Positions 39,344 to 41,751 of a DNA stretch of 64,000 nucleotides are shown here, piece after piece. Position 1 is the first letter of the stretch. Each line of letters begins with the position of its first letter. The stretch is from Pavona decussata (taxonomy: Eukaryota). The position numbers and the translations under genes were made by a program. Where the stretch lies: the NCBI GenBank assembly GCA_977016875.1, contig CDRNST010000257.1:124001-188000 (forward strand), written 5' to 3'. The notes beneath the pieces were generated by a model that worked only from the letters and a program-made list of their open reading frames with translations, had not been told where the DNA came from and did not search any database.

Positions 39344-39421
39344 ATGTGCATAAGAGAAAGCCATTAATTAAAAGCTACAACACATGACAGGATGATTTGT
39401 TGGTCAAAGACTTTATTTTAT

Positions 39422-39447
39422 TTGGTGGCTCCTAAAGGAGCCGTTTG
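39422..39447 (-). terminator. Histone-type 3' stem-loop downstream of the Merlin transposase
   Basis: Minus strand CAAAC GGCTCC TTTA GGAGCC ACCAA (stem 39427-39442), 23 nt after the stop codon. Confidence 0.75.
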
Positions 39448-39465
39448 TTGTTTAACTAAGCGAAC

Positions 39466-40347
39466 TTAGTTGGGAGGATGGAACTGGGCAATGTCAGCTA
39501 ACAGGTTATCGAAGTGATCGCCTGGATAAACTTTCCGCCAGTTGAACTCGTCAAGATAACTAGGCAGTTTGTCACTGTTGGTCCCGTTCATTGCTTTCAA
39601 CTTTCTCTTCACCTGACTCCAGACTCCTTCTATGGTGTTCGTGTGGGCTCCTGTGTAAGGATCGACAAAGTTCTCCGAATGGTTCACCATGAGATGAACA
39701 TAACCGCTATTGTTCAGGTTGAAGTAGGGCGAAAACTTGTCAGAAATGATGAGAGTTCCGGGTTCAACGAAGTTCTGCACAAGGCCGGTAACCAGGGTTT
39801 CTCTAGTACGGTCGGGTACTCGAAAGGTGAGAGCTCTGCCACTTCCTCTTTCAACCATGCTGAACACCTAGGTGCCTTTGGAAATGCGCCCTCTATTGTA
39901 TTTCCGTTTGTGGCCGAACATCGATTCATCGATCTCCACTGTCTCTCCGCGCCCGCCTAACTTAATGTGACCGTGTAGGATCTTTAGGGAGCAGATGTTT
40001 CTGAGTGCCTGCAGTGCTGTGGTGACTGTCCGCAGTGATAACCCTGTCAGCATTGCCACTTTTTTGCTTTGAACTTCAATGGACCACAGGAAAATGACAT
40101 ACAGCCAATGTGCCAGCGGGATCTTTGAATTTTCGAAAAAGGAGCCAGCTCTGATGGATCGCCGTTTTCTACATCGACGCGCCGAACATTCCCAGTGGTA
40201 TCCATCTTGCGTGTACGGCCTTTCTCTCAACACCATCTCTTGTCCGCAATCACATTCACGCCTTGCAGCGAGTAAGCCATGATCGACAAGGAACGTGAAA
40301 ATAGTCTGATAACTCTGGATTAAGGTGAGTAGCTCGTGATGATTCAT
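39466..40347 (-). pseudogene. Merlin DDE transposase (ISXO2/IS1595-like), intronless, one premature stop at 39868-39870
   Basis: Zn ribbon C..C...WEC....C; SIRAGSFF; VEIDES..RKYNRGR; W->stop before VFSM; IISD..Y..L; VNHSENFVDP.TGAHTNTIEGVW. Confidence 0.95.
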
Positions 40348-40646
40348 AGTGAAATCAGTCAAATTCAATTTTGAGTGATCCTTTTATAACATCGGTCGAA
40401 TCGAAATCGACCAATGGAAACTAAGTTATGGTAATAGCACAGTATTCATATGCAAAAATTTTTCCAAAAGTAATTGGTTTTGGCTAATAAACAATCACAC
40501 AATTATTCATTAGTATTCCTTTCTGTAGCTACTAACCAATCACATCTCTGTGATTTCGATCCATTGAAGTGTTTAAAGGCATTACAACTTAGCTCGAAAA
40601 TTCATTAGTGTCATTAAGGCATAGCACGAGAATCCACCCGAAAATA
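40348..40646. promoter_or_regulatory. Compact bidirectional promoter between the two Merlin genes
   Basis: TATAAAAG on the minus strand (~40381-40388); CCAAT at 40411, 40473 (reverse) and 40536; ATGCAAAA at 40450; TTTAAA and TCATT before ORF2. Confidence 0.6.
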
Positions 40647-41508
40647 ATGTCTCAGCGAGTTCTAAAATGTATTATCTGTGGTGGTGACCACTCCATATTT
40701 CATTGCAATCACAAGTGCGGTGTATGCCATGGCGACGTTCGCCAGTGTTTATGCACGGCCCAGGCTCCACAGAAAAAGAAAAGAAAAGGAGCAACACAGA
40801 GCAAGGGACCTGAGCCATCCACATCAGCAGCGCAGTCATCACAGTCCTCTCAGACCGCCTCCAACAAAGAGCTACAGCGAATCTACGAAAAGCTGAAAAA
40901 AAAAACACGAACAGGAAGGGGAGTCCCTCAGGAACCTGCAGCAGCAGAACCAAGAACTCGCAGGCGAGCTGGCAGACAAAGAGAGGGAGTTAGAAGAGTC
41001 TACTGCTGACGCTGAAGAGCTGGCTAACCTGGTGAGGACGAGAGACGAAGCAATAAAGACCCTCCAAAACAAGTTGGCGGATGCCAAAAAGACCATCGCC
41101 GCTCTGAAGACAGAGCTGGAGATGCTTCGCAGAAGCCAAACGGACCAACCGCAGCAGCAGCAACAACAAAGGGGTGCAAATCGAGTCAGTACGCACAGCC
41201 TCGCGGGAATCCATCAGCGCTACCAGAAAGTCCTGCACATCCTAAAAGAAAATGACTGCAGCATGGCGAATGCTTTTCGGCTGGCCGACTGCCCCAGAAG
41301 TACCCTTAGAGACTTTGTGGCCATAGCAGAGTTAAAGATCGTCGACTCTAGAGAACACGATCTCGTCATCCGCGACCAGTCCGCGTCAGTTAAAGACCTT
41401 GAAGCTGTCTGCAGGAGGCGCCTCAGGCGGTACATACCCGTGATGGCCAACATGCGGAGAGAGGGGAAGCTGTTGCCACTCAAGTTTGATGAGCGTTTCA
41501 ACGAGTAA
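40647..41508 (+). CDS. Merlin accessory ORF (~286 aa if the A10 run at 40896-40905 is A9): Cys/His Zn knuckle, basic patch, coiled coil, CCDC106-like C-terminal domain
   Basis: CIICGGDHSIFHCNHKCGVC..C.C; KKKRK; heptad region; RYQKVL...SMANAF...RSTL....AIAELKIV resembles the CCDC106 C-terminus as recalled. Confidence 0.7.
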
Positions 41509-41514
41509 AACTAC

Positions 41515-41540
41515 AAAACGGCTCTTTTAGGAGCCACCAA
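41515..41540 (+). terminator. Histone-type 3' stem-loop downstream of Merlin ORF2
   Basis: AAAAC GGCTCT TTTA GGAGCC ACCAA (stem 41520-41535), 11 nt after the stop codon. Confidence 0.75.
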
Positions 41541-41751
41541 GTTTGCGAAAGTAAATGACCAACTATAAAATGACTAATAACGACAAATGAGGGGGATTGG
41601 GTATTAGTAAACAGTTACGTCAAAAATACAATATGGAGTCCCAGCAACGATCACACACAAGCAGAAACACAAGTAAATTAAGCGAATCTAATCCAATTCC
41701 TTTTATTTCTTTGATAATGCATTTATTTTAATGTATTTTCAACCTAAATCC

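Follow-up and report, generated by a model that had tools for sequence, protein, structure and literature searches.

In the stony coral Pavona decussata, a Merlin DNA transposon with two genes is probably packaged like a replication-dependent histone gene pair, with the histone 3' processing signals of its host at the end of each gene. This is based on the analysis of a 64,000-nucleotide stretch of genome assembly GCA_977016875.1 (contig CDRNST010000257.1, positions 124,001 to 188,000 of the forward strand), called the window here, and on copies and relatives of the element found elsewhere. Judged from its sequence signals, the element most likely uses the host's pathway of SLBP and U7 snRNP (small nuclear ribonucleoprotein), and this would give poly(A)-less, replication-coupled mRNAs of both genes. 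Positions are those of the window unless a contig is named; the features are collected in Table 1.

The 3' modules and the histone genes of the host

The transposase gene and a second, divergent open reading frame (ORF), ORF2, are each followed by a hairpin, 23 nt after the stop codon of the transposase gene and 11 nt after that of ORF2. Folding gives a 6-bp stem and a 4-nt loop for both. With the Rfam model Histone3 (RF00032, gathering score 34 bits), the transposase-side hairpin is matched at 39406-39447 on the minus strand with 35.5 bits (E 1.3e-6, whole 64-kb window), and this is the sole cis-regulatory match in the window. The match on the ORF2 side, at 41515-41559 on the plus strand, scores 32.9 bits (E 7.5e-7, 4 kb searched). 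In the 602-Mb genome there are 267 occurrences of a 22-mer made up of the hairpin and its flanks, ACGGCTCYTTTAGGAGCCACCA, against none of the reversed control. The hairpins are real and beyond chance. A first-pass annotation, made from the letters of the window, had placed them at 39427-39442 (minus) and 41520-41535 (plus) and had called them a close match to the Rfam histone family, and it was right on both counts.

Histone stem-loops have a U at loop position 1, an A-rich 5' flank, and an ACC 3' flank. A G-C second pair and a U at loop position 3 are diagnostic of them (bioRxiv 10.64898/2026.10.14.759114). All of these features of sequence and structure are found in the Merlin hairpins, GGCTCY-TTTA-GGAGCC with AAAC and ACCAA flanks. 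The context of a histone coding sequence is lacking, the ORFs upstream of the hairpins being those of a transposase and a coiled-coil protein.

The host histone genes lie in an array on contig C185, with a 6016-bp unit made up of H4(-), H3(+), H1(+), H2B(-), and H2A(+) (L061, G000:C185:1411000-1419000). The array is also found on contigs C96 and C479, and there are at least 19 units on C185, judged by the spacing of the Rfam matches. The host genes score 37.4-37.5 bits with RF00032, and H1, H2A, H2B, H3, and H4 all use the same hairpin variants as the transposon, GGCTCY-TTTA-RGAGCC. The 3' ends of H4, H2A, and H2B read AAAAC-GGCTCT-TTTA-GGAGCC-ACCAA, the H1 hairpin is GGCTCC...GGAGCC, and that of H3 is GGCTCT...AGAGCC. 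The transposase hairpin is identical to the H1 type and the ORF2 hairpin to the H4/H2A/H2B type, and the AAAAC 5' flank and the ACCAA 3' flank are common to the host histone genes and the transposon. It had been noted as a weakness in the first-pass annotation that the top base pair is C-G or U-G. The pairs are indeed so, but the objection falls because the host histone hairpins share them.

In the host genes the hairpin is followed by 6-8 variable bases and then by AAAG(C/T)NNTGACCAA. The histone downstream element (HDE) within this stretch, AAAGYNNTGACCAA, is carried by Merlin at the same spacing. A position weight matrix (PWM) for the HDE was built solely from 13 verified host histone genes, and with it the transposase-side element AAAGTCTTTGACCAAC ranks second of 127,966 window positions, an empirical P of 0.0002 for a 12-position window. 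Matches are found 9 to 12 nt past the stem end in 16 of 16 transposon ends, at +11 or +12 in all but L099, and 15 of these ends have an empirical P of at most 0.002, the value for the copy from Stylophora being 0.04. The best PWM match in the window (45849-45866, 18.7 bits) has no hairpin upstream and is a chance match, so the matrix alone is not specific. The comparison with host stem-loops that had been proposed in the first pass therefore gives the same hairpin variants, the same flanks, and the same HDE spacing, and by sequence the anatomical claim is well supported, more strongly than it was first put.

The two ends together form a 48-nt inverted repeat, I9 (39399-39446 and 41516-41563), which is 79% complementary and flanks the gene pair. 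It is best read as two complete histone 3' processing modules, that is, as one directional signal read outward. Because the stem is itself palindromic and the repeat encloses both genes, it might be supposed to act as DNA, through transposase binding sites, nested terminal inverted repeats (TIRs), or a recombination hairpin, the likeness to histone genes being coincidental. This is extremely improbable. The repeat is separated from the ends of the element by 1.2 kb and 0.43 kb and for that reason is not its TIR. Nested TIRs had been named in advance as a case that would overturn the annotation, but 39399 and 41563 are not flanked by a target-site duplication (TSD), and it is at 38197 and 41993 that the element has its TIRs and TSD, with an empty site. 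These outer ends are also the ones used by deletion derivatives and divergent Merlin copies. In addition, the Histone3 match and the match to the host HDE matrix at the host spacing are far beyond chance, and a single-gene Merlin and a pogo-like element each have just one copy of the module, after the stop codon.

The likeness may also extend to the promoter. The stretch between the two genes has CCAAT boxes, TATA boxes in both orientations, and octamer-like TTT(T)GCATAT motifs, and the promoter of the related copy L006 has an exact ATTTGCAT. The host H2B-H2A intergenic region contains TGGATCAATTAACA, GATCGAAAT, TGATTGGTTG, and TTTTGCATAT, motifs which are also present in transposon versions, and three common motifs (TGGATCAA(A)TTAACA, TGATTGGTT, and TTTGCATAT) are in the same order in the host region and the transposon. 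In a collinear k-mer chain test of four transposon versions against this region, the observed chain was reached by 6/500, 0/500, 14/500, and 46/500 dinucleotide shuffles, while the host H4-H3 promoter gave nothing comparable in the same orientation. This is suggestive of a whole cassette, beyond the 3' ends, for which a pair of histone genes was the model or the source.

Persistence of the module and its presence in a second transposon family

Both ends carry the module in a subfamily that is about 70% identical in DNA to the window copy (L006, L007, L009, and L012). The hairpin is thus kept behind both ORFs in the family, conservation having been set as a test in the first pass. The module is also found 3' of the transposase gene in Stylophora pistillata (L062, 35.7 bits), in Logan contigs of further sequencing runs (L067 and L070), and in two more coral assemblies, where protein identity is 51-53% (L063 with 38.7 bits, and L099, slightly decayed). 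The RF00032 scores of the relatives are 33.7-38.7 bits; homologues from Acropora and Montipora (P0073, P0080, and P0186) were left out of this survey. L063 and L099 are single-gene Merlins that lack ORF2 and have one hairpin copy after the stop codon; its presence therefore does not depend on a two-gene layout. No hairpin was found in Merlins of about 41% identity (L064-L066), one of which, L064, has AATAAA right after its stop codon. By this distribution the hairpin is the mark of a single clade of coral Merlins.

The transposase lineages that carry the module are under purifying selection, with ratios of non-synonymous to synonymous substitution (dN/dS) of 0.08-0.20, and their synonymous divergence runs from 0.44 to saturation. 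The 16-nt hairpin, its flanks, and the downstream element are kept in all of them, while the spacers before and between these parts cannot be aligned. Such persistence argues for selection on the module or for its repeated re-acquisition, and in either case for a module that is in use. It would be possible for an ancestral Merlin to have taken up the sequences flanking a pair of host histone genes and to have carried the signals along unused ever since. The module is the same as that of the host and the promoter motifs resemble those of the host H2B-H2A region, which makes capture a plausible origin. As an account of the present state of the element, a passive relic is very unlikely. A neutral module of 40 nt would not outlast synonymous saturation while the adjacent spacers diverge completely, and the module is found directly 3' of the stop codon in both genes, in the single-gene L063 and L099, and in a pogo-like family. 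What neutrality looks like can be seen in the decay of dead copies, with a CTTA loop in L099 and GGGGCC in L005.

This pogo-like family is dispersed in the Pavona genome and is among the top genome matches to RF00032 (38.4 bits). The ORF upstream of its hairpin encodes a pogo/Tigger-type transposase with PF03184 (DDE_1) and PF03221 (HTH_Tnp_Tc5) domains in an open frame of at least 359 aa. There is one copy of the module, the hairpin being 32 nt 3' of the stop codon and followed by AAAAGTCAATGACCAAC. Copies with the 3' module number 18, and among 12 of them similarity stops sharply about 240 nt further downstream. The loci, L036-L047, include G000:C4:304092, C20:1744615, and C257:246188, the last of these on the contig of the window but outside it. 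The same module is therefore present in a transposon that is unrelated to Merlin and is not unique to the latter. Before the pogo-like hairpin the downstream element recurs in inverted form, GTTGGTCA, which gives a long-range stem (fold z = -4.9).

Six more dispersed Histone3 matches of 34-39 bits are located away from histone genes (L031, L032, L034, L049, L050, and L052). They have short ORFs or none, and no Pfam match was obtained for the ORFs of L034, L049, L050, and L052. An AEKRARQ(I/L)DF motif is common to L049 and L052. These loci may be decayed element-borne genes.

The element, its insertion site, and its genes

The first-pass annotation had given the span of the transposon as 39399-41563. 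This was too short, since alignment with copies elsewhere in the genome extends to limits at 38197 and 41993. The TIRs (GGTAATTTT...) begin with GGTAATTTTGAAG, with GG at the start, and inward of them are arrays of CCGACAG-type subterminal repeats. Merlin TSDs are reportedly 8-9 bp, and the 8-bp TSD of this element is within that range. On contig C81 a paralogue joins both flanks with a single CACAAGTG, which is the empty site. The insertion is within an ORF, which we take to be Helitron-like, and the uninterrupted paralogue, from G000:C81:182331-182725 onward, is 97% identical to it. The flanks are window positions 38100-38196 and 42002-42777, with a 243-aa ORF at 42046-42777. Given its TIRs, 8-bp TSD, empty site, and IS1595/ISXO2-type DDE transposase, the 3797-bp element is a bona fide Merlin, all of the defining features that were tested for being present.

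Table 1. Positions in the window of the Merlin element, its genes, and its signals
Feature	Position	Strand	Basis and remarks
Complete Merlin DNA transposon, 3797 bp	38197..41993	(-), strand of transposase gene	Copy alignment, TIRs, TSD, empty site
Left TSD CACAAGTG, 8 bp	38189..38196	(.)	Identical 8-mer at 41994-42001
Left TIR (GGTAATTTTGAAGAGCTCC...) and CCGACAG-type subterminal repeats	38197..38295	(.)	Inverted repeats I1, I6, I10, I15, I16
HDE-like AAAGTCTTTGACCAAC	39399..39414	(-)	Begins 13 nt past stem; PWM 14.0 bits
Transposase stem-loop AAAC-GGCTCC-TTTA-GGAGCC-ACCAA	39422..39446 (stem-loop 39427-39442)	(-)	RF00032 35.5 bits; fold
Transposase gene, intronless, 293 codons, IS1595/ISXO2-type DDE	39466..40347	(-)	PF12762; in-frame TAG 39868-39870
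Shared bidirectional promoter, about 300 bp	40348..40646	(.)	TATA, CCAAT, octamer-like TTTTGCATAT, GATCGAAAT
ORF2, intronless	40647..41508	(+)	+1 frameshift in A-run 40896-40905
ORF2 stem-loop AAAC-GGCTCT-TTTA-GGAGCC-ACCAA	41516..41540 (stem-loop 41520-41535)	(+)	RF00032 32.9 bits; fold
HDE-like AAAGTAAATGACCAAC	41548..41563	(+)	PWM 11.0 bits, P = 0.0011; offset as in host genes
Right subterminal repeat array and right TIR	41751..41993	(.)	Sequence read directly
Right TSD CACAAGTG, 8 bp	41994..42001	(.)	Perfect match to left TSD

The transposase matches PF12762 (DDE_Tnp_IS1595) with E 1e-23 in the window copy and E 3e-26 in the intact copy L006, where the 293-aa protein is encoded at L006:2702-3583 without introns. 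The intact relative of ORF2, also without introns, is L009:2215-3045 (276 aa). These relatives bear out the earlier description of two intronless, divergent genes. In ORF2 an N-terminal CX2CX3HX4C zinc knuckle is followed by a central coiled coil and then by a weakly CCDC106-like C-terminal region; the last of these matches PF15794 with E 5e-7 and 30.1 bits, just below the cut-off of 30.2. A search of the ESM Atlas with ORF2 returned nothing informative. The named homologues of both proteins are all scleractinian (Stylophora, Oculina, Acropora, Montipora, Pocillopora, and Porites), and homologues of ORF2 were found in stony corals only. As the Merlins at 51-53% identity lack it, ORF2 would be a later addition to the hairpin-bearing Merlin or a loss from it. 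The 3' untranslated regions (UTRs) of the Merlin and pogo-like genes are very short, with 11-32 nt from stop codon to hairpin, as in histone genes.

Two defects, an in-frame TAG in the transposase gene and one additional A in an A-run of ORF2, are present in the window copy, and contigs of four public sequencing runs have neither (39869 T>C, TAG->TGG, and an A-run shorter by one). With this stop codon and this frameshift, the copy in the window is dead, and recently so.

Merlin is repeated in the genome, with 77 matches and subfamilies of about 70% identity. Internally deleted derivatives resembling miniature inverted-repeat transposable elements (L014-L021; C199:390387-390962, C35:4489221-4489796, C282, and C142) retain both arms and both 3' modules, with the ORF2-side hairpin tandemly doubled, 32 nt apart. 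The left arm of the window copy contains a tandem duplication of about 216 nt (38853-39340); other Merlin copies align to it twice, and the contig of one run omits 39005-39222. Palindromic CCGACAGT/GGCCGAC arrays are found in the subterminal regions at 41765-41970 and 38206-38294. Sub-threshold matches of these arrays to microRNA models (among them mir-4529, for which the score is 51 bits and the cut-off 88) were dismissed as repeat artefacts. Outside the element, a tRNA-Thr (CGT) is located at 33741-33814 on the minus strand (44.3 bits with Rfam), on which ARAGORN agrees.

Proposed use of the histone pathway and its possible consequences

If the signals are used by the host machinery, RNA polymerase II transcripts of both genes would fold the hairpin and SLBP would bind to it. 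The U7 snRNP would pair with the downstream element and CPSF73 would cut a few nucleotides past the stem. The production, translation, and decay of the resulting poly(A)-less mRNAs would then follow SLBP and be those of the S phase of dividing cells. For cut-and-paste elements, excision from a donor that has already been replicated brings a gain in copies. Excision just after replication of the donor would let the sister chromatid restore it, with a copy gained, and on general transposon biology this gain may be why the module has been kept. The RNA-binding domain of SLBP (PF15247, SLBP_RNA_bind) is encoded in the host genome by two exons on contig C90, with 54.8 and 36.6 bits.

Several observations weigh against this proposal. 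The U7 small nuclear RNA was not matched in a search of the genome with RF00066, and three pattern searches for an anti-HDE stretch beside an Sm-type site gave chance matches or a coding repeat only. The RF00032 score of the ORF2 side is 1.1 bits below the gathering score. The stem is invariant apart from its top pair (C-G or U-G, and U-A in host H3) and therefore gives no covariation support, and plain local alignment of the promoter with those of host histone genes falls short of significance (z ~1.8). A search for sequencing runs with the element turned up none that is recorded as RNA, and the four runs that were compared behave like DNA, because their Logan contigs extend over the non-genic arms and are not confined to the genes. 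Loose contig ends at the hairpin break read into the 3' UTR of host H2B, and such ends are assembly-graph breaks owing to k-mers shared with histone genes. Finally, there is an AATAAA in the transposase-side spacer, as in host H1, and a polyadenylated form ending just downstream is possible on this account. The contig ends at ACC, ACCA, ACCAA, and ACCAAAT (L070-L072 and L104) had been considered as RNA 3' ends and were rejected, the same break being present in DNA-like runs.

It has to be considered, then, whether most of the mRNA is polyadenylated at A/T-rich signals beside the hairpin, which would be an accessory for SLBP-dependent translation or stability or for a switch between 3' forms. 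The AATAAA between the hairpin and the HDE on the transposase side is present in most lineages as well as in host H1. Histone-type and canonical processing elements are reported to overlap on human histone pre-mRNAs (PMC9756948) and polyadenylated histone mRNAs are reported from differentiated tissues (PMC5100578), both of which count in favour of such a scheme. However, the ORF2-side module in the window has no AATAAA, no part in polyadenylation is known for the conserved downstream element, and the distant hairpin-less Merlin L064 has an ordinary AATAAA instead, which suggests that the hairpin and AATAAA are alternative solutions. Main use of polyadenylation is on balance unlikely.

Comparison with known systems shows how closely the proposed SLBP/U7-dependent Merlin resembles a replication-dependent metazoan histone gene pair. 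Common to both are the 6-bp stem and 4-nt loop with its G-C second pair and U at loop positions 1 and 3, the A-rich 5' and ACC 3' flanks, and an HDE at the spacing of this host. The intronless, head-to-head genes with very short 3' UTRs and a promoter of about 300 bp with CCAAT and octamer-like motifs are likewise shared. The Merlin proteins differ, being a DDE transposase and a coiled-coil/zinc-knuckle protein, as does the mobility of the unit, with its TIRs, TSD, and dispersed copies; use of the pathway by Merlin is a prediction from its sequence signals. With the Merlin superfamily (related to IS1016/IS1595) the element shares an IS1595-type DDE transposase of about 290 aa, an 8-bp TSD, TIRs that start with GG, and deleted non-autonomous derivatives. 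It differs in its second divergent gene and in the histone-type 3' ends of both genes, neither of which, to our knowledge and in the papers searched, has been described in Merlin.

Specialised 3' ends and replication-linked transposition are each found in other elements. Triple-helix ENE-type elements stabilise the 3' ends of plant and fungal transposon RNAs, and there too a mobile element supplements or replaces poly(A)-dependent 3' biology with a specialised RNA structure. Theirs, however, is a stabilising triple helix with a poly(A) or A-rich tail, whereas that of the coral Merlin is a host histone cleavage signal, which would make poly(A) needless and tie expression to the cell cycle. Ac/Ds transposes from replicated donor sites, and gaps left by P elements are repaired from the sister chromatid. 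In these, as proposed for Merlin, a donor that the element leaves after replication can be restored by repair, so that copy number rises, but the timing is set by DNA hemimethylation or by the choice of repair pathway and not by the 3' end of the transposase mRNA.

In textbook accounts the stem-loop/U7 pathway is exclusive to replication-dependent histone mRNAs. A literature search that took in a 2026 survey of histone 3' end evolution found no transposon genes with histone 3' ends, in agreement with the first pass, which had known of no such description for Merlin; subscription journals were mostly outside the scope of the literature search and an earlier description is possible. The wider proposal is that at least two unrelated superfamilies of stony coral transposons, Merlin and the pogo-like family, have co-opted the histone 3' signal, in Merlin apparently with the promoter as well. 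Their transposase mRNAs would lack poly(A), be processed by SLBP and U7, and be restricted to the S phase of dividing cells. Such mRNAs would be the first non-histone class with this kind of processing, and cut-and-paste elements would have a new way of timing transposition to replication. The chances of this proposal, which extends from sequence to RNA, are about evenly balanced.

If it is true, the exclusivity of the stem-loop/U7 pathway to histone mRNAs is broken, and there is a simple molecular route by which cut-and-paste activity could be coupled to DNA replication, the condition for copy gain. The compact cassette of promoter and 3' end would be a natural test of whether such signals suffice for S-phase-specific protein production. 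Genome annotation could misread genes of this kind as odd histone-linked loci. The activity of coral transposons would be underestimated by poly(A)-selected transcriptomes, in which these elements would be nearly invisible. In a coral, which has no segregated germ line, the dividing cells in which the transposase would be made are cells that can also transmit new insertions.

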